DNA of 64,000 nucleotides, taken from NCBI GenBank assembly GCA_009859145.1, contig VRVR01000018.1:303923-367922 (forward strand), read 5' to 3'. Below, piece by piece: positions 9,364 through 19,891 of the stretch. The number at the start of each line of letters is the position of its first letter. The stretch's first letter is position 1. The DNA comes from Andalucia godoyi And28 (lineage: Eukaryota > Protista > Jakobida). The notes below the pieces were generated by a model, which was not told the DNA's origin, searched no databases, and was given only the letters and a program-made list of their open reading frames with translations. The translations under genes were made by a program, and so were the position numbers.

Positions 9364-10638
9364 TCACTTTCTGTCCTTCCCTTTTCTTTTCTTTCCCACT
9401 TCTTTGTCCGAGTCTGAATCCGCCAATGGACGACTTCGGCTGGGTTTCGCAAGCGCTCCAGCACCAGTGTCCTCCAGCTCCTCTTCCTCCTCTTCTGGTG
9501 CGTCATCATCATCACCAGGGCTCTGCACCCCACGAGCCTTTTCCGCTTTCAAGCTCATAGCTGCAACTTTTTTCTTTAAAGCAGCCGTGCTCTCCTCTTC
9601 TGAATCCGAGAAAGCTTGCTCTTCACTGTCCTCCGAGTCTTGGATCTTACTCTTCTTGCTCTTCTTTTGCTTCTTGCTGTTCTTTTTGGTCTTCATCGTC
9701 GATGGCACGTCATCATCATCCGAATCGCTGTCACGATCTTCCTTGGACGCACCAGATTTCTTTTCCTTTTTCAAAGCTCGCTTGAGCTTCTTTTCTTCGG
9801 TTCTTGAATGCTTTGCTCCCTTATCTGCAACCTCCGATACAGCCTCCGCGGCCTTGGTGGCTGGAGGAGGCTGCTCAACCATCGATTTCGCGTGTGAATC
9901 ATCCGCAACAAACTGATCAATCCGTTTTTCTCCTTCTTCCAACACTGCGCTGTCGATAATCTCAATCGAAGATGCTTGCTGTTGGAGGACGCGATACATT
10001 TCAGGGTCAATCAGGCAGGTCACTGCAGATCCCTTTGCTCCTTGTGGCACACCGCTGTTTTCCACAAACACGCCGAGATCTTTGAGCTCGGCTTCTCCTA
10101 TCCCAAAGATGCGGACCAACATGCGAGATCGCGCAATTGGCATTGTCTTGGAAAGCAGCCTGATGACCTCCAACGCCTGTTGCTTTGCGGGCTTCGTCAG
10201 CCTGATGACGTAGTGGGAATCCTTCAATGCTCTCTCAATCGTTGGTAAAGGATACGGTCTTTTTGTAAGCGGATTGAACGCTTTTTCCGCAACAATATTG
10301 CAGACATCATGAGTTAGCTGTGTTAGAATAGCCTGCCGCTCCTTCTCAGCAACCTGCAGCTCGCCCTTTTCCAAGATTTCGAGAATAATTTTCTGCTCAT
10401 CGTGTGTTCCAAACACTTCGTACATCTCCTGCTTATTCGCCATCTCCCCCTTTCCCACATTGTCGAACACAATGCGAGTCTGGAGCACCTCGTCGAGATC
10501 CTTTTCGACTCCCGATCTCCAAGAAAGAACCTTGTTTGGATACGCTGCAATCTCGAACTTCACGCCTTGTTTCTTGTACCGAATAACCGCAACATTCGTG
10601 TGTCGCCGCTGATTGACAGGTGTGAAGTGCTGCGCCAT
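9364..10638 (-). CDS. SBDS: Ribosome maturation protein SBDS/Sdo1 with long K/D/E/S-rich C-terminal extension (424 aa)
   Basis: MAQHFTPVNQRRHTNVAVIRYKKQGVKFEIAAYPNKV...DLDEVLQ...NPLTKRPYP...KPAKQQALEVI is the SBDS signature. ATG at 10638-10636; the ORF-track extension upstream only reads through a (CT)n microsatellite. Confidence 0.97.
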   Translation of the reverse strand: MAQHFTPVNQRRHTNVAVIRYKKQGVKFEIAAYPNKVLSWRSGVEKDLDEVLQTRIVFDNVGKGEMANKQEMYEVFGTHDEQKIILEILEKGELQVAEKERQAILTQLTHDVCNIVAEKAFNPLTKRPYPLPTIERALKDSHYVIRLTKPAKQQALEVIRLLSKTMPIARSRMLVRIFGIGEAELKDLGVFVENSGVPQGAKGSAVTCLIDPEMYRVLQQQASSIEIIDSAVLEEGEKRIDQFVADDSHAKSMVEQPPPATKAAEAVSEVADKGAKHSRTEEKKLKRALKKEKKSGASKEDRDSDSDDDDVPSTMKTKKNSKKQKKSKKSKIQDSEDSEEQAFSDSEEESTAALKKKVAAMSLKAEKARGVQSPGDDDDAPEEEEEELEDTGAGALAKPSRSRPLADSDSDKEVGKKRKGKDRK

Positions 10639-10761
10639 CTTGATTGATCCAACCACCTCTCTCAACACCAGCAGAAAAAAAACCCAAAAAATATATTCCG
10701 TGGTAAAAACAACAACAACAGCAGCAGCAATAGCAGCAACAGCCAAGAAAAAGTGTTGTGA

Positions 10762-10765
<4 letters not shown>

Positions 10766-10837
<72 letters not shown>
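10766..10837. repeat. (AG)36 microsatellite in the divergent SBDS / membrane-protein intergenic region
   Basis: Direct reading of the sequence. Confidence 0.98.
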
Positions 10838-10839
<2 letters not shown>

Positions 10840-11073
10840 CGAGACACGAACTTGATCGAATCCATGACTTTTCTCTGACACGCTTTGTCTCGAACTCTGA
10901 CTTCAGCAATTTCAATAAGATAACTCAAAGGTTTCAATTTCGCCTTATTCCATTTTTGTGTCGTTGTTTTTCTTATTTTGCATTTTCTTCGGCTTTCCCC
11001 CCTTTCGTCTGTCTCCTTGTGTTTGCTGTTTCTTCTGTCTCTCGGGCTAGGTGAGATACCCGGTTCTAGGAAA

Positions 11074-11962
11074 ATGCGATTTGTAATTCTTGCAGTTGTT
11101 GTGGTGGCAGTTGCGCTTGCCTCGCAATCGGTTTGCGCTGCAGAAGCTGTGCCGGAAAAGCTCAATCTCGTCAAGTTTTTGGAAGGGTATGTCCATTAGT
11201 TGATTCTGCTATTAATGGTGATAGTGGTTATTATCATGCTTTTTCTGCTCTTCAACTCTCCCATACTTACATGCATTTCTCAGAGAGTGGATTTTCCAGA
11301 AAGTGTTGTTTGATCTTTCGGCGTCCACCGATGACGAGTCGATCATGACGGGGTCCTTGTCATTCTCGCCGGTTTCTGAGTATGCGATTGATGGAGTGTA
11401 CTATGAGAACTCGACTTCTACGTCGTTTGCCAATGTTCGGAAGGTCTCGTTGGCGATGGATTCGGAATCGACCGGTAGTTTCCTGTTTGCACCAGTCGAA
11501 TCCTACGAGTCGATCAAGAAGATCGCGTCTGCCAAAAAGACTCCCGTTGAAAATGCAGATCTGGCGGAGGCGGATGCTGACGCAGATGATGAGGTTCCGT
11601 CGACGAAATGGTTTGACGTGTCCATCGAAAAGGCTCCTGCTGGGCAGTTCTACGTCTCTCGCTCTGGAAATACCATGTTCCGTGTTGTGAGCAATGCTGA
11701 ATTTCTCATGGACACCTTGGAAAATGGGCACCTTGTGTCGATCCATGCATACCGAGTCAATGTCGAAAAGCCAAAGTCGCTTTTCCAAAAGTATATGATG
11801 CCGGGCATGCTCATTTTGTTCTTTGGAATCAACTTGTTTGTCAAGCGAAAGACCGCCGCGTCCGCAGCTCGTCCTGCCGGTACCCCTCGCCGTCCCACTC
11901 CTGCCCCGACTCGCCCTGCTGCCGGTGCTGGAACCGGACTTGCATCTTCCAAGAAGGACTGA
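11074..11962 (+). CDS. Uncharacterised type I membrane protein (signal peptide, lumenal domain, C-terminal TM, basic tail); exons 11074-11186 and 11284-11962
   Basis: Signal peptide MRFVILAVVVVAVALASQSVCAA. Removing the GTATGT...TTTCTCAG intron joins GG+A (Gly) in frame with EWIFQKVLFD... TM segment YMMPGMLILFFGINLFV followed by KRK. Confidence 0.8.
11187..11283 (+). other. Spliceosomal GT-AG intron (97 nt)
   Basis: GTATGT donor, CTTAC branch-like motif, pyrimidine tract and CAG acceptor. Splicing restores the frame between two ORF-track fragments. Confidence 0.8.
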
Positions 11963-12193: not shown

Positions 12194-14374
12194 CTACAAT
12201 TCTTGATGAGAATCGGAACCGTCTCCGTCGTTCGCAGTGGCGGCCTGACCGGCTTGGGCCTGGGCGGCGGCTTGTTGCTGCTGTTGTTCCTTCAACGCAG
12301 ATCGTGACGTAGTGCCGGGACCGCGATACAGATTATAGTCCTTGTTGCGGAAGCTGGACATGTTGGCTCGCGTGGTCTTCTTGACGGAGCCTCTCTTTTT
12401 CTTCTTTTTCTTTTCTGTTCCATCGTCAGTCCCTTCTTCAGAAGAGGATTCGTCCAGATGCATTTGTGCTATGGCGGCGACATCAAAGCCGTCGAATACC
12501 ACAACTTCGACACGCGACCGACCAATTCGATAAGCCGGAGCAGGCATGAAACACCCACAGTTGCACTGCGCACCAAATGGATTCGCCTTTCCGAGCTTCG
12601 CTTCGCAGTGGGGGCAATCGATCTTGTCATCCTCGCCAACTTCAAAGACGTCATTGAATGCTTCTTCCGAGATGAAAAACGAGTCGCAGTCCAGCGCCTC
12701 CTGGCTCTTTGATCCGGAAGATTTCTTTCCAAAGTCGCGACTTCCTTTCACACCTTGAGAATGCGACAAAACATCAGTTTCGCAAAAAAGAATCTTTCTG
12801 CACATCTTGCATGCGTACTCCAGGGCTTCACGTGTCTGGAGAGCCGGTTTGAGAGCAGACTTTGACGACCCAGCAATCTTGGAATCTTCTGAGTTCTCTG
12901 CAAATTTCGTTCCTTCTTCCTGATCCTCTTCCTGATCCTCCTCCAGCACATCATCCTCACTCGATTCTTGTGTCTTCTTTGTCTTTGTCTTTGTCTGCTG
13001 CTTCTGTTTCTTTGCGGCTACAGCGGGTTCCTCTTCTGAATCATCGTCATTCACTCGAGGCTTGTTTTTTTTCCCTCCCTTCTTGGGCTTCATGGAAGCA
13101 CGAACGTTCTCCGCATCATCATCATCATCACTGTTTGCCGCTGCAGACTTTTTCTTGGCCAAAGCAGCGCTGTCCTCATCATCACTGCTGTCGCCTCGTC
13201 TCTTTCCCTTCTTGTTCTTCTTTTTCTTGTCATTGGCATCTGTGATCGATTCCGTCTTGGCGTCCTTTTCTTTTTCCTTTTCCTCATTCTTCTTCTTGGA
13301 TTTCGACTCCTTTGAAGCCGCCGAATGCGCAACAGCACCCACAGCTTGGGCTGTAGAGGTTGCAACCGAGGCACCCGAGGACGCAGCGCTTCCGGCTGCG
13401 GTTGTCGTCGTCGTTGTCGATGCGAATGACTCTGCTGCTTGAAGTGCCGCATCCTTTGTAGGATCGTACTCGGAAAGACCATAGAATTGGATAGCGTTTT
13501 CCAATGTTGTTGCGGCGATTTGCTTGACGGTCACACCGAGTTTTGCAGCCACGGTTTCCAAAATGTACGGGAAATTGGAGGGTTCGTTTCTGGTTTCTCG
13601 GATGAATGCATCTGGAATGTTCTGTGGCGTGTCAAACGGCGAATTGGACGCCAGCAAGAGCTTCGAAGCAGGGATCCTGGGCAGCAGATCCAGAACGGGA
13701 TGCGGCTTCAGCGGATCGCAGATGACACCGGTGATCATGATGTAGCAATCAAGATCGAGGAACGCCTGAAGCTCCGTTTCGGAGCCCTGAAAGTTGAATA
13801 CTGCCACACTTGGTGCATCTTCCTGGAACAACTCCTTTCCGGCAACAAGCAACTCGACTAATTTTTCGTGTGCAGATGCATGCTGCACGACAACAGGCAG
13901 TCGGATCTCGGTCGCAAGCTTGATCTGCCCCTCGACGCACTTTTCCTGCGCATAATGCGTGGCAAGGTCTCTGGTGAAGTCCAATGCACAATTCATTGCA
14001 ACGGCATGCGAGACCAAGGCATGGTCATGCAGCTCCTCCAGCCACTTGTCAATCTGTTTCTCATTGTTTCGCTTAATATTATCTGGATGGATTCCAACAG
14101 CAGCGTACAGCTCACCAGCATTCAGCTTGCATAGATTGAGCAAATCACCAATCTTTTCAAAATCCGATGTCGACACAATCACAGCGCGCACACCGCTGTT
14201 GCGCGACCGTCGCAGGACTGCTTCCAAGTCACGATCAAACTTCCTGGAAACCAAATTGGCCATGCAGTCAATCATCGATGCATCCGACTCGCATTTGTTC
14301 AGCGACGGAGGATCAAGAGTATACAGCGGCCGCTCGACTGCAGGGCCTGATTCAAGCTTCTTCTGGGCATCCAC
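12194..14374 (-). CDS. TatD-fold pseudo-nuclease + acidic/basic linker + Yvh1/DUSP12-type C-terminal zinc-binding domain (726 aa)
   Basis: N-terminal part aligns colinearly with E. coli TatD as I recall it (MIDCMANL, GIHP, CALDF, ITGVICD, RNEP). C-terminal part YACKMCRKILF...H...CDSFFI...CPHCEAKLG...GAQCNCG...PAYRIGRSRVE matches the DUSP12/Yvh1 zinc domain. Confidence 0.88.
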   Translation of the reverse strand: MDAQKKLESGPAVERPLYTLDPPSLNKCESDASMIDCMANLVSRKFDRDLEAVLRRSRNSGVRAVIVSTSDFEKIGDLLNLCKLNAGELYAAVGIHPDNIKRNNEKQIDKWLEELHDHALVSHAVAMNCALDFTRDLATHYAQEKCVEGQIKLATEIRLPVVVQHASAHEKLVELLVAGKELFQEDAPSVAVFNFQGSETELQAFLDLDCYIMITGVICDPLKPHPVLDLLPRIPASKLLLASNSPFDTPQNIPDAFIRETRNEPSNFPYILETVAAKLGVTVKQIAATTLENAIQFYGLSEYDPTKDAALQAAESFASTTTTTTAAGSAASSGASVATSTAQAVGAVAHSAASKESKSKKKNEEKEKEKDAKTESITDANDKKKKNKKGKRRGDSSDDEDSAALAKKKSAAANSDDDDDAENVRASMKPKKGGKKNKPRVNDDDSEEEPAVAAKKQKQQTKTKTKKTQESSEDDVLEEDQEEDQEEGTKFAENSEDSKIAGSSKSALKPALQTREALEYACKMCRKILFCETDVLSHSQGVKGSRDFGKKSSGSKSQEALDCDSFFISEEAFNDVFEVGEDDKIDCPHCEAKLGKANPFGAQCNCGCFMPAPAYRIGRSRVEVVVFDGFDVAAIAQMHLDESSSEEGTDDGTEKKKKKKRGSVKKTTRANMSSFRNKDYNLYRGPGTTSRSALKEQQQQQAAAQAQAGQAATANDGDGSDSHQEL

Positions 14375-14860
14375 TATCGCTTGCTTGTTCTTTCGAAGAC
14401 TCTTCTTGCCTTCACGACTTCCGCGGCGCTACACACACACACACACACAAACACGCAAACACACAAACACAAGTGCAACACCAATTAAAAAACCCATACA
14501 AATCAGTAATTTCCCTTTTGAATAAAATGGCTGAACACAACCTAACTTGAAAGCAATTTAAACAACACTTTTGCCCAGGAATGATGCAAAACAAAAGGCC
14601 CGCAGTCGGGAAAGTGCATACATCTACTTGGAACATGACGGTCAATTTCTCTACTTGGTGCTGGGCAATAATCAAAGGAAACGGGAAGAGAGAAAGCGAG
14701 GAAGCGAGAAGAAAGGTACAAAAAAGAAAACCTGAAAGACCGGATGTGAGGTTGAAGGACTGAAACGCACGCCCTTTTTCGCGGGGTTCCTCCAGTCGTA
14801 TGGGGTTGGAGGGTATAGATAGAACAAAATGAGAATGACATGCGGAGGCCTCACATGAAG

Positions 14861-15592: not shown

Positions 15593-16204
15593 CTAAGCAG
15601 CGCATTTCTTGCAGAGGATGAAATAGTCGTATTTCCTGGCTTCCAACGGGTTCTTTTTCAGCACAATGTCTGGAGACGTCTCGTCGATTTCATATCCAAG
15701 TTTCGCATAAAACTCGCGCGCAGACTTGTTGTGGTAAAAAACAGTGAGGAGGACCCTGCTTCGGCATGGCGTGCGCAGAGCAATCTGTTCGACGCAGCGC
15801 ATCAGCATGGATCCCAAGCCCTTTCTCTCAAACGCCTGCGCAACCTGCACTTCATACACGTACACGCATTCTTCCGCAGGTTCATAGTCGTCTTCGTGCG
15901 TGAATCGAAATGCAGCGAATGCCACGAGAACGCTGTCGTGGAAGGCAAGAATGAGGCGGTGATCGGGATGCACCATTTCTCGGCGCTTCTTCTTCGCATT
16001 CCAACCCCAGGAGGACTGCTGGTACAGCGACCGCATGTTATCGCCCGTCAGCTTCATCACGGCGTCCAACACACCGGCGCTCATCGTCTTTCCGTGCTCA
16101 AACTGCACCGAATAGCCACGACTGTTGCTGCCTGCCCATTGAGAAAGCTCATGCTGTGCAAGCGCCGCGATGTCAGATGGCTCTCGGAGCTTCGTTGTCG
16201 ACAT
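15593..16204 (-). CDS. NAA40: N-alpha-acetyltransferase 40 (NatD, GNAT family)
   Basis: NMRSLYQQSSWGWNAKKKRREM...FAAFRF...VYVYEVQV...RKGLG...VLLTVF...N...FYAKLGYEIDETSP. Confidence 0.92.
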   Translation of the reverse strand: MSTTKLREPSDIAALAQHELSQWAGSNSRGYSVQFEHGKTMSAGVLDAVMKLTGDNMRSLYQQSSWGWNAKKKRREMVHPDHRLILAFHDSVLVAFAAFRFTHEDDYEPAEECVYVYEVQVAQAFERKGLGSMLMRCVEQIALRTPCRSRVLLTVFYHNKSAREFYAKLGYEIDETSPDIVLKKNPLEARKYDYFILCKKCAA

Positions 16205-17380: not shown

Positions 17381-19114
17381 CTACTGATGAATTCTGCAAA
17401 TTGGGTTCGATCGAATCTTTCCAATGTCCTGTTTGTGTCCCAAGAGATCTCGGATGTTGTCGATTTCGTACAGAATCATGGTGGGTCGCTCCAGCGAAAG
17501 ACCCCACGCAACGACCTTCACGTCGGCCGGGAGGCCCATTGGCAGCAACATTTCCGGTCGAAAGACACCCGAGTTCCCAATTTCAACCCAGCGCTTCAGC
17601 TGTGGATGGAATCCAAAGATCTCCATCGACGGCTCTGTGTAAGGATTGTAGGCCGGTTTGAAGCGGACGTTGTGGATACCGATTTTCGAGAAGAACTGCT
17701 TGATCACACCCATCAGAGTTCCGAGATTGATCTTGTTGTCGACAACCATGCCCTCCACTTGATGGAACTCGCACAAGTGGGTCGCATCCATCATTTCGTT
17801 TCGGAACACACGATCAATCGAAAAGAACTTGCGCGGTTGAAACTCCACGGTCTTTCCAGCCTTGGTGCATTCCGCCTTCCAGTCGTCGGCCAATCGCTTG
17901 AGCACACGTGAAGAAACTGCCGTGGTATGTGTACGCAAAACATTCTTTGAAGCCTCCTCCTGCCTCCAGTTGTATCGGTATCCAATAGACCCATATCCAC
18001 CCTTTTCGTGGACGTCCTTCACTCTTTGCACATAAGCATCGTCCATCACAATGGCGGGCTTGTCGTCCTCCGACTGCTTCTTGGTCTTGTCTGCAGGACC
18101 CAAGCGGTCCATGGAGGGCATCAACGGCGAGAGGGTGAGCGCCGGGGCAGTCGCTGGATCGGACAGGAAGAACGTGTCGTGTGCATCACGCGCAGGATGT
18201 TGTTGCGGCTGGAACAGCGCATCGAAGTTCCAAAAGGAAGACTCTACAAACGCATTCGTGGGCATTTCCTCGAATCCAAGTTCCAGGAAGATTTCTCGGA
18301 ACTGTGCGCGAACCTTCAGCAACGGATGCAAGCAGCCACCAGCAGGAGGCTGGCCAGACGCGGCGAAGTTGTACGGTTTAAACTCTGCGGTCTTCCACGA
18401 ACCTGTCGCAATCATCTGCGGCGTCAAATCAAGCTCCAGCTTCTTTCGCTCAAGTGCGAATTCTGCACCTTTTGTGATGGAAAAGAACTTCTTCGTTGAC
18501 AGCTGCACAAGCTTTCGCTTCTTCAGCGAGTCAAGCACTTTAGCATCCACGGCATCCTGGGATCCGTTCTCCTGGATCTTCAGCAGCGCGCTCTTTGTTT
18601 GGTCCTCAAGAGAAATATCCGCTGCACACTGAACCATAACAGTATCCGTCGACGTCTTCTTTTCCTTCTTCTTCTGCTTGTCCGTGCCATCCGCAGCAGG
18701 TTCGACAGCAGGTGCGTCGGCTGGTGCGTTTGGGTTTGGGACGGTAAATGTTGAGAGCCATTTGTTTCGCAGAGCAGCAGCAAGACCGAACTTGCCAATT
18801 TCTCCCAGTTTTGCATTGATTTCGTCCACAGAAATCTTGTGTTCCGGGCTTGCATGCACGAACGACAGCACGCGAGCTTCGGGAGACCCGTCCTTTGCAT
18901 AGGAGGATCCTTCGGATGTAAGCTCGAGGGCCGTTGAAGACTCGAGCGTAGTCGCGACCATCTGTGCTGTTTCAAGCGATTTCAGCGTCCCAACAAGTGC
19001 TTCGTGAGAAACCGACAGTAAAGCTGCATACGCCAAGGAACTCGCGATCTTGGAATTCGACTGCAGATCATGCAACAATCGCTGCTCGATGGCCTCAGAC
19101 GTTAGCGATGACAT
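17381..19114 (-). CDS. FARSA: Cytosolic phenylalanyl-tRNA synthetase alpha subunit
   Basis: HPLLKVR...[36 protein letters not shown]; LRTHTTAVS; [22 protein letters not shown]; [14 protein letters not shown]; [11 protein letters not shown]. First ATG at 19114. Confidence 0.98.
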
Positions 19115-19891
19115 TTTTCTGTTTTCTTCTGTTTTCAACCTTTTTTCTCCGTGCCTTGTACTCCAGCACTATCCAACAAACACAAGAAGCAGATAAAGAC
19201 GAGAGAACCAGGAGGTATAAAAAGGAAAGGAAAAGAAAAGAAAAAGAAAAGAAAAGAGGAGACAAAGAAGAAGAAGAAGAAAAATAATGCTGAATCTAAT
19301 TGATGTGTTTTGGACGTCCTTTAATCTTGGTTTTTCGCATTTTATTTTTTTGGTGTCCAATTGTTTAAAGTGGAGCATCAATCGCAATTTTAGAAAAAAG
19401 TCGTGTCTCGGGTTTTATTTATTTTATGTTTTGTTTTGCTTTTGTCGATTCGTAATCGTCGAAGACGCATCTTCGTTTTTCCCTTTTCCGTTCCTCCTTT
19501 TTGTTTTTATTATTATTATATATATATATATATATTTTTTTTTCTTCTTCTGAAGTCGTGCTCCCTGCGTAAGATGTTGCTCTCTGGGCGTGTTTGTACA
19601 CTTCGATTGCGCTCGTCCTGCGGATAATGGACGGGGTGGAGTCCAGTCGTTTTTCCTGTCATCCGCTCTCAGCAGGCAGTCCCACCGCGAGCTCTGTTGA
19701 TGATGAAGGCCAATTCCTTCAGCAATAGGATTCGTCTGCTCACGGTATCCTACAAAAAGAAAACACCCACCTAAACAATACCAGCTCGTCCATTTTTGTC
19801 TCCCTCTTCTCTTCTTATTGTTATTCTTGTTTCTTATTATTATTCTTGTTCTTTTCCTTTTTTTATGACATCATGACGACGAACGTTGTTG

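Follow-up and report, generated by a model that had tools for sequence, protein, structure and literature searches.

The 64,000-nucleotide stretch of the jakobid Andalucia godoyi And28 that was analysed here (contig VRVR01000018.1 of assembly GCA_009859145.1, positions 303,923 to 367,922; hereafter the window) contains on its minus strand a single frame of 726 residues (12194..14374 in its listing of open reading frames, ORFs), which is 100% identical to the EukProt entry ANDGO_04370, labelled “3'-5' ssDNA/RNA exonuclease TatD”. An earlier note, made from the sequence alone, had read this gene as a catalytically dead TatD nuclease fused to the domain of Yvh1/DUSP12 that binds zinc. We find a family of proteins in which an N-terminal motif, a TatD barrel without E91 and E201, a linker, a Yvh1-type zinc module and a basic tail of the GNFSxFRNK type follow each other in a fixed order, and all of these elements are present in the 749-residue product predicted for Andalucia. 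The family appears to be ancient, eukaryotic, widespread and apparently undescribed. On the sequences compared below, we consider both the architecture and the existence of the family to be very probably correct.

According to a Pfam scan the only domain of the 726-residue ORF is TatD_DNase (PF01026), which is matched at 1e-36 (127 bits against a cut-off of 27) by residues 35-299 over the whole length of the profile (positions 1-253 of 253). In the PDB, the best sequence matches are the TatD of P. putida (3rcm, 3.5e-30) and that of E. coli (1xwy/4p5u, ~1e-28), while human TATDN1 is matched far more weakly (1e-13) and the Entamoeba TatD-family protein 3ipw reaches 8e-4. The barrel sequence is therefore nearer to gamma-proteobacterial TatD than to human TATDN1 or Entamoeba 3ipw, which hints at an origin separate from the canonical eukaryotic TATDN1 line, possibly a bacterial one. 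AlphaFold2 (AF2) models the barrel at a predicted local distance difference test (pLDDT) score of ~90, and a Foldseek search with this model returns 3rcm, 4p5u and 1xwy at E-values of 5.5e-18 to 5.8e-17 and target-normalised template modelling (TM) scores of 0.80-0.86. Together with the full-length Pfam match, these scores show a sound fold; the earlier note had seen the motifs of the fold as intact.

In E. coli TatD the metal ligands are E91, H127, H152, E201 and D203; the E91A, E201A and D203A variants are each inactive and H62A is strongly impaired, while H127A and H152A are still active (Chen et al. 2014, PMC4176340). Pairwise and MAFFT alignments of the Andalucia protein against E. coli TatD show the exchanges E91N, H127Q, H152F, E201A and D203N, with H62 retained in the motif GIHPDN. 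At the level of motifs, VAIGECGLD becomes VAMNCALD, FMHCRDAH becomes VVQHASAH with a histidine one position after H127Q, VLHCFTG becomes AVFNFQG, and LIETDAPY becomes LLASNSPF. All TatD substitutions listed in the earlier note were reproduced in this way, and its E. coli numbering, recounted from the 4p5u sequence, is correct. Since E91, E201 and D203 are replaced by Asn, Ala and Asn, all three decisive carboxylates are missing, and we regard the Andalucia protein as in all likelihood nuclease-dead. Like the group I 3'-5' exonucleases (E. coli and Pseudomonas TatD, TATDN1), it has a full-length barrel without an N-terminal HxH and shares the H62, R98 and RNEP elements. Unlike them, it lacks E91/E201/D203, H127 and H152, carries the family-specific conserved loops HPDN, THxxQE and TPQNIPD, and is fused through a linker to a zinc module.

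The zinc module has the order CxxC...H...C...CPxC...CxC of a two-zinc beta-tent domain. No Pfam model recognises it in the Andalucia protein, and Pfam gives no DSPc match in that protein at E<=1. All 8 ligand positions of Yvh1 are present, as equivalents of C232, C235, H248, C280, C307, C310, C324 and C326, and yeast Yvh1 (6n8m_Y, residues 197-342) aligns to ORF residues 488-623 with an E-value of 2.7e-5 when the whole protein is searched and 6.4e-6 when the C-terminal part is used. In an AF2 model built from a 7-sequence alignment the core of the module has a pLDDT of 84-93. The top Foldseek match of this model in the PDB is again 6n8m_Y, that is, Yvh1 in a pre-60S particle (E 2.9e-5, TM 0.63 target-normalised, 25% identity), followed by Mis18/Yippee, YPEL5 of the CTLH E3 ligase, the CULT domain of cereblon, MsrB and the C-terminal domain of RIG-I, all of them beta-tent zinc folds. 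These latter proteins resemble the Andalucia module in their general fold class, but the similarity is weak (E 3e-3 to 0.1, 9-18% identity). A complete Yvh1-type zinc domain, placed by the earlier note at ~12500-12820, is thus present with 8 of 8 ligands and with Yvh1 as its top fold match.

Word-indexed homologue searches gave 9 matches for the full-length query, a search that was probably swamped by low-complexity words, and 1 match for the zinc module with its tail. Already this first search contained long TatD proteins bearing the same CxxC...CPxC...CxC module. A clean profile of the zinc core, used in the word-indexed search, matched mostly plant stand-alone modules and none from A. godoyi. 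We then relied on profile A3, which was built from TatD-fused zinc modules only and was run exhaustively against 1.84 billion cluster representatives. Of the 2164 representatives that it matched at E<=1e-3, 982 were still matched at E<=1e-10, and the top 150 all lay at 3.1e-17 or better. Among these best 150 of the 2164, 54 were of the TatD class (median 598 residues) and 28 had the phosphatase motif (median 312 residues), with 0 having both; the motif HCxxGxxR was found in no TatD-class protein of this classification. A Pfam scan of the 109 top matches of at least 230 residues assigned TatD_DNase to 47, DSPc to 34 and Yippee-Mis18 to 1. TatD lies N-terminal to the zinc module in 32 of the 32 proteins in which both landmarks were located. 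Judged by their predicted sequences, at least 54 cluster representatives share the TatD plus zinc-module architecture.

Named members are Volvox africanus GIL43496.1, Pelomyxa schiedti KAH3763698.1, Tieghemostelium lacteum KYQ89994.1, Mallomonas annulata, Cavostelium apophysatum and Clastostelium recurvatum, the last two as Trinity transcripts that carry both domains. Together with Andalucia they span Discoba, Chlorophyta, Amoebozoa and Stramenopiles. The architecture search across protists that the earlier note had called for therefore yields a family in four supergroups, and the fusion is not unique to Andalucia. There is no animal, fungal or land-plant member among the named hits, and absence from those groups was not tested. 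Two orthologues, P0002 and P0004, are each encoded by a single uninterrupted ORF on unrelated contigs, next to genes with typically eukaryotic domains. The metagenome models P0006, P0007 and P0009, as well as members of their clusters, stop in the middle of the zinc module after CHKCRAFLFSQTSVLSHALDAVRTIFKV and continue into unrelated sequence; these predicted proteins are probably truncated by an unrecognised intron.

In the library that was searched, no publication contains both TatD and Yvh1, in agreement with the earlier note, to whose author no description of the fusion was known. Co-mentions of TatD and DUSP12 (1-4 mentions each) were confined to papers with unrelated titles, on iPSC (induced pluripotent stem cell) reprogramming and uterine implantation; among the matches listed for TatD together with “ribosome biogenesis” or “pseudoenzyme”, no paper was relevant, and neither TatD nor Yvh1 comes up in the paper on the A. 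godoyi genome (PMC7050145). The TatD and Yvh1 zinc domains are each known; what appears undescribed is their combination, its age, the separate zinc clade and the two terminal motifs.

We tabulated the active-site states of 40 family members from a MAFFT alignment. No member has Glu at the position of E91: F, L, I, Y, W, M, N, S, T or A is found there, and in most members the replacement is one of the bulky hydrophobic residues F, L, I, Y and W. Glu is likewise missing throughout at the E201 position, which holds A, C, G, S, I or V. At the D203 position 23 of the 40 have D, 15 have N and 2 have L or M, and H127 is His in 21. The H62 position is His in 35 members, and an Asp at the H64 position, specific to the family, is found in 35 as well. 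The best-conserved segments of the barrel lie on the old substrate face: G.HPDN, GL...R...tHfaQE, which holds the equivalent of R98, and S.sP..TPQNipD...R..RNEPSNlp. All 9 sequences of alignment A1 share the R98 equivalent, which, like the RNEP loop and the TPQNIPD loop, is kept in at least 80% of the 40 members. R98 and R219 of E. coli TatD contact DNA. The last of the three segments forms a loop over the former active site that is the best-conserved stretch of the whole barrel; it is modelled at pLDDT <50 and matches the position of the E. coli loop that bears R219. As the loops of the substrate face are the best conserved, selection would therefore have retained the pocket while dropping the catalytic metals.

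The barrel may be less dead in some lineages than in others. A less decayed, stramenopile-type subgroup (P0020, P0010, P0021, P0048, P0066, P0102 and P0143), which includes Mallomonas, keeps H62, H127 and D203 and has a Cys at the 201 position (..LHxxD.., ..CSDSPW..). Such a His/His/Cys/Asp set could be able to bind zinc.

How close is the zinc module to that of Yvh1? An hhalign comparison of TatD-class with phosphatase-class zinc cores gave a probability of 99.8% and an E-value of 1.8e-30 over 100 columns, which puts the homology of the two beyond doubt, and the 8 zinc-ligand positions do not vary among 32 cores of the TatD class and 23 of the phosphatase class. In a neighbour-joining tree of 102 alignment columns, 36 of 36 TatD-class cores fell together with 0 phosphatase-class cores among them. 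The nearest neighbour was always of the own class, and cores of different classes were 0.74 apart on average, compared with 0.61 and 0.51 for cores of one class. By this measure the TatD-class modules are placed as a clean sister group to the Yvh1/DUSP12 modules and are not nested in Yvh1. The earlier note had suggested that a pseudo-nuclease replaced the phosphatase partner of Yvh1. The fusion itself is real, but 54 of the top 150 representatives, four supergroups and a sister zinc clade do not describe a local swap.

Three residues of Yvh1 are known to contact the 60S subunit by stacking: W329 stacks on H43 in the P stalk, R269 on H89 and F260 on the sarcin-ricin loop, and the zinc domain binds rRNA directly (Zhou et al. 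2019, PMC6393466). The function of yeast Yvh1 resides in its zinc domain and does not need the phosphatase domain; F283L is a loss-of-function allele (PMC9404827). The position of W329 is W in 22 of 23 phosphatase-class cores; TatD-class cores have V, I, A, L, F or H there, and the Andalucia protein has F. The loop corresponding to F260/R269 could not be aligned. At these two positions most sequences of either class have gaps, and the length of the loop in TatD-class proteins varies between a few and several hundred residues. Both classes conserve F284 and have a hydrophobic residue at F283, the pair being FF in Andalucia. In comparison to yeast Yvh1 (6n8m chain Y) and human DUSP12, the Andalucia module thus has the same 7 Cys and 1 His, the same order of elements and F284. 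It differs in its partner, which is a TatD barrel instead of Yvh1's own dual-specificity phosphatase, in an unrelated variable loop, and in the basic tail with GNFSxFRNK that Yvh1 lacks.

A Yvh1-type module without an active phosphatase is also found in the plant [quoted passage not shown]. Unlike the Andalucia protein, proteins of this type are stand-alone, ~125-200 residues long, and have neither a TatD barrel nor a GNFSxFRNK tail. They (P0190-P0263) were found with a mixed-class profile and are likened here by architecture, not by class. The stand-alone modules of land plants represent a third architecture of the Yvh1-type zinc module. Literature mentions of the At4g18593 locus were found only on unrelated topics.

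The coding sequence of the Andalucia gene is predicted to start upstream of 14374. On the minus strand above this position we read ATG TTC CAA GTA GAT, then GTATGC...(GT)n TAG, then CGC CGC GGA AGT CGT GAA GGC AAG AAG. Removal of the 193-nucleotide intron gives a protein of 749 residues in total that begins MFQVDRRGSREGKKSLRKNKQAIV. The splice restores VDRRGSREGKKSLRKNKQ, which is near VDRRGSREGKKSSLRRNKQ of P0051 and VDRSGAREGKKSLRKNKQ of Pelomyxa P0071. The gene bounds of 12194-14374 adopted in the earlier note are accordingly too narrow, as the coding sequence reaches 14636 across the intron. Published introns of A. godoyi all have GT..AG ends, with a mean of 151 nucleotides and a range of 55-756, and intron-bearing genes mostly have one each (PMC7050145); the intron proposed here fits them in size and ends. 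The deposited ANDGO_04370 model (P0001, 758 residues) has the MFQVD start too, carries an unconserved N-terminal insert, LGCVQPFYSKGKLLIC, and appears, from a reading of the sequence by eye, to require two introns. Because the N-terminal motif of the family is restored by a single 193-nucleotide GT..AG intron, the 5' end of the public model seems to be spliced wrongly. A (GT)n dinucleotide microsatellite lies at the 3' end of this intron.

The barrel and the zinc module are joined by the linker of ~220 residues rich in K, D and E that the earlier note had described. It measures 218 residues, is rich in K, A, S, E and D (K37 A35 S27 E24 D22) and has an AF2 pLDDT of 29-39; among family members its length and sequence differ widely. 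The domain content given by the earlier note, TatD, linker and zinc module, stands, but the note missed the spliced N-terminus and two conserved terminal motifs. The N-terminal motif, with the consensus M(G)DRxGGRExK..SLKKSKKNP, forms the very beginning of 22 of 57 TatD-class representatives, many of the others being 5'-truncated; none of the 17 sequences in alignment A7 departs from its D, R, G, R, E and K. A Lys-rich tail of the GNFSxFRNK type, often continued by SF(I/V)PNA, is present in 32 of the 57, with N, S and R invariant in alignment A8; in Andalucia it reads ANMSSFRNK, with M for F. Phosphatase-class matches end at about profile position 167, short of this tail. In full-length members the two motifs co-occur.

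Both motifs stay at pLDDT <50 in a near-full-length AF2 model, the sole “helix” of the tail being a poly-Q/A stretch. Pfam has no match for them at E<=10 (five N-terminal and three C-terminal peptides), and profile searches with both against all PDB chains gave chance matches alone, at E>1. A seeming likeness of the N-terminal motif to TMA7, a small ribosome-associated protein, was dropped, there being no Pfam or PDB match. An intramolecular docking of the motifs is unsupported, since they are disordered in the near-full-length model, which is a weak test without predicted aligned error values or coordinates. Both are likely to be short linear motifs meant for a partner outside the protein. 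The positions of all features are collected in the table below.

Features of the TatD-zinc gene and of its surroundings in the window
Feature	Position	Strand	Basis or remark
Exon 1, ATG TTC CAA GTA GAT (MFQVD), opens the N-terminal motif	14622..14636	(-)	sequence reading and spliced translation
Predicted intron, 193 nt, GTATGC...(GT)n...TAG, GT..AG ends	14429..14621	(-)	sequence reading and spliced translation
(GT)n microsatellite in the intron	14431-14460
Exon 2, remaining coding sequence, 744 residues and stop	12194..14428	(-)	ORF listing and spliced translation
N-terminal basic motif, exon-2 part, RRGSREGKKSLRKNK	14384..14428	(-)	family consensus
TatD-type TIM barrel, group I type, no N-terminal HxH, acidic metal ligands gone	13478..14272	(-)	Pfam PF01026, AF2, Foldseek
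Codon at the E. coli E91 position, Asn	13991..13993	(-)	alignments
H127-position Gln (13883-13885) and H152-position Phe (13796-13798)	13796..13885	(-)	alignments
Codons at the E. coli E201-T202-D203 positions, Ala-Ser-Asn	13643..13651	(-)	alignments
Loop specific to the family, above the former active site, SPFDTPQNIPDAFIRETRNEP, 263-283 in the 744-residue exon-2 translation	13580..13642	(-)	conservation in 40 members
Low-complexity linker, 218 residues, alternating Lys-rich and Asp/Glu/Ser-rich runs	12821..13474	(-)	composition
Yvh1-type two-zinc beta-tent module	12497..12820	(-)	core EYACKMC...SRVEVVV
Acidic, then Lys-rich stretch (…EEGTDDGTEKKKKKKRGSVKKTTR)	12368..12496	(-)	disordered in both AF2 models
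C-terminal family motif, ANMSSFRNKDYNLYRG	12320..12367	(-)	consensus GNFS(S/N/E)(F/Y)RNK
Gln/Ala-rich C-terminal extension, lineage-specific	12197..12319	(-)	ORF and homologue comparison
SBDS/Sdo1 homologue	9364-10881	(-)	SBDS_N 2.3e-29, domain II 8.6e-21
Dinucleotide microsatellite, intergenic, (GA)n-type tract	10758-11174		RERERE / SLSLSL frames near 10800-10900
Unannotated ORF, 219 residues	11303-11962	(+)	between SBDS and the TatD-zinc gene
GNAT acetyltransferase	15593-16204	(-)	6.7e-17
Phenylalanyl-tRNA synthetase alpha chain	17381-19138	(-)	4.2e-82

The upstream neighbours of the gene, which encode an acetyltransferase and a tRNA synthetase subunit, confirm a compact and mostly intron-free packing. 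About 1.3 kb from the 3' end of the TatD-zinc gene lies a gene for a homologue of SBDS/Sdo1, a late cytoplasmic 60S maturation factor. In a eukaryotic genome without operons, the proximity of SBDS is probably a coincidence and is given little weight.

What could a TatD barrel without its catalytic metals do next to a ribosome-type zinc module? The best overall explanation, which we favour somewhat over all others taken together, is that the protein is a non-catalytic member of an ancient TatD plus zinc-module family that binds nucleic acid or ribonucleoprotein (RNP). That the function lies specifically in binding RNA or RNP is a more tentative proposal. The protein would act as a binder or adaptor for nucleic acid or RNP, with no nuclease activity. 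Its zinc module would dock on structured RNA or on an RNP surface, which is the most economical guess because the closest relative is a direct rRNA-binding wedge, and the site or mode would have to be unlike that of Yvh1 on the 60S subunit because the Trp residues are missing. The dead barrel might hold a ligand uncut, most plausibly a single-stranded 3' end or a nucleotide, as it is derived from an exonuclease and keeps the R98 equivalent, H62 and the RNEP loop; these three and the TPQNIPD loop would be the retained substrate-facing elements. The RIG-I C-terminal domain, which is among the Foldseek neighbours of the zinc module, is a binder of RNA ends. Alternating runs of Lys and of Asp/Glu/Ser, as well as basic termini, are typical of nucleolar and ribosome-biogenesis proteins, and in the Andalucia protein the charged linker and basic termini may direct it to the nucleus or nucleolus or provide further contacts to RNA. 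Our leading guess is that it takes part in ribosome assembly or in ribosome-associated quality control. In its most specific form, which we offer as a speculation with a low chance of being right, the family would be an ancient paralogue of Yvh1, possibly as old as the last eukaryotic common ancestor, and would work in ribosome/RNP assembly or surveillance, the module sitting on rRNA while the dead barrel holds, protects or senses an RNA 3' end and leaves it uncut. Such a paralogue could have escaped notice if it is missing from the animal, fungal and land-plant models.

Several points weigh against a non-catalytic, RNA-binding protein of this kind. W329 is not conserved, which removes the sole mechanistic link to the P stalk, and two other Trp residues that are invariant in the phosphatase class (in EPxxWM and FNWSG) are absent from the TatD-class consensus. 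Beta-tent modules can also mediate protein-protein contacts, as in Mis18, YPEL5 and cereblon, and because of this RNA binding is not assured. The conservation of H62 and Asp64, together with H127, D203 and Cys201 of the stramenopile type, makes a residual or altered metal site possible in some lineages. In addition, the AF2 models are shallow (7-9 sequences) and hold no inter-domain information.

Could the protein simply be a functional equivalent of Yvh1, with a module that sits on the pre-60S particle between P stalk, sarcin-ricin loop and Tif6 and releases Mrt4, and with its phosphatase exchanged for a pseudo-nuclease? The homology of the zinc modules and the hydrophobic F283/F284 pair speak for it, and charged linkers are common in ribosome-biogenesis factors. 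The neighbouring SBDS/Sdo1 gene points the same way for what it is worth, and in yeast the zinc domain suffices and the phosphatase domain can be spared (PMC9404827). Against this, the residue that contacts the P stalk is W in nearly every phosphatase-class core and variable in the TatD class, the loop that would carry the contacts to the sarcin-ricin loop (F260) and to H89 (R269) is unalignable and very variable in length, the TatD-class modules form a clade of their own, and the family bears extra conserved motifs that Yvh1 lacks. A Yvh1-type role in P-stalk binding and Mrt4 release, as the earlier note had implied, is thus unsupported, and we consider it improbable. A barrel that is still an enzyme, targeted by the zinc module and hydrolysing with alternative ligands (H62, D64, a His beside position 127, and D203 or C201 in some lineages) or by a metal-independent mechanism, is slightly less probable still for the Andalucia protein, its chances being higher for the stramenopile-type subgroup, where H62, H127, D203 and Cys201 could form a zinc site. 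H62, which has a critical catalytic role in E. coli TatD, and Asp64 are each kept in most members, and the loops of the pocket are the best-conserved parts of the barrel. However, Andalucia has lost all three essential carboxylates (N, A, N) as well as H127 and H152, the loss of any single one of these carboxylates abolishes the activity of E. coli TatD (PMC4176340), and the bulky hydrophobic residue at the E91 position of most members would fill the metal site.

A non-catalytic adaptor unconnected with ribosomes or RNA, such as a chromatin, DNA-repair or ubiquitin-ligase factor that uses its beta-tent module for protein contacts, deserves more consideration, and we hold it to be unlikely but conceivable. 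The next fold neighbours after Yvh1 are Mis18/Yippee, YPEL5 in the CTLH E3 ligase and cereblon CULT, the Trp that contacts rRNA is lost, and TatD enzymes work on DNA 3' ends in repair (PMC4176340). On the other hand, the module is far nearer to Yvh1 in the hhalign comparison than to Yippee-type folds, which are matched at 3e-3 and worse, and the Pfam Yippee-Mis18 model is found in a single one of the scanned proteins. Finally, the fusion might be an artefact of annotation or assembly in which two adjacent genes are read as one ORF. A long low-complexity linker without detectable homology and a deposited gene model that is wrong at its 5' end would be in keeping with it. We regard an artefact as extremely improbable, since there is no stop across 744 codons, the same domain order recurs in 54 representatives, including the uninterrupted ORFs on two unrelated contigs and the Trinity transcripts of Cavostelium and Clastostelium, and the N- and C-terminal motifs co-occur in full-length members. 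The same continuous frame, orthologous ORFs and transcripts uphold the assumption of the earlier note that this is one gene.

The zinc domain has been regarded as belonging to Yvh1/DUSP12 alone, and knowledge of it comes from yeast and human. The family described here would be a second, equally old partnership of the Yvh1 zinc module, with a nuclease-derived pseudoenzyme that has terminal motifs of its own, in jakobids, green algae, amoebozoans and stramenopiles. The names under which its members are deposited, “3'-5' ssDNA/RNA exonuclease TatD”, “TatD-related deoxyribonuclease” and “hydrolase TatD”, probably mis-state their activity. If these proteins are ribosome-associated, they would represent a new eukaryotic assembly or quality-control factor, possibly one that is missing from the usual models. 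If they are not, the Yvh1 zinc module would be a general docking device, and the family would show cleanly how purifying selection can act over long times on the substrate face of a TatD pseudoenzyme.

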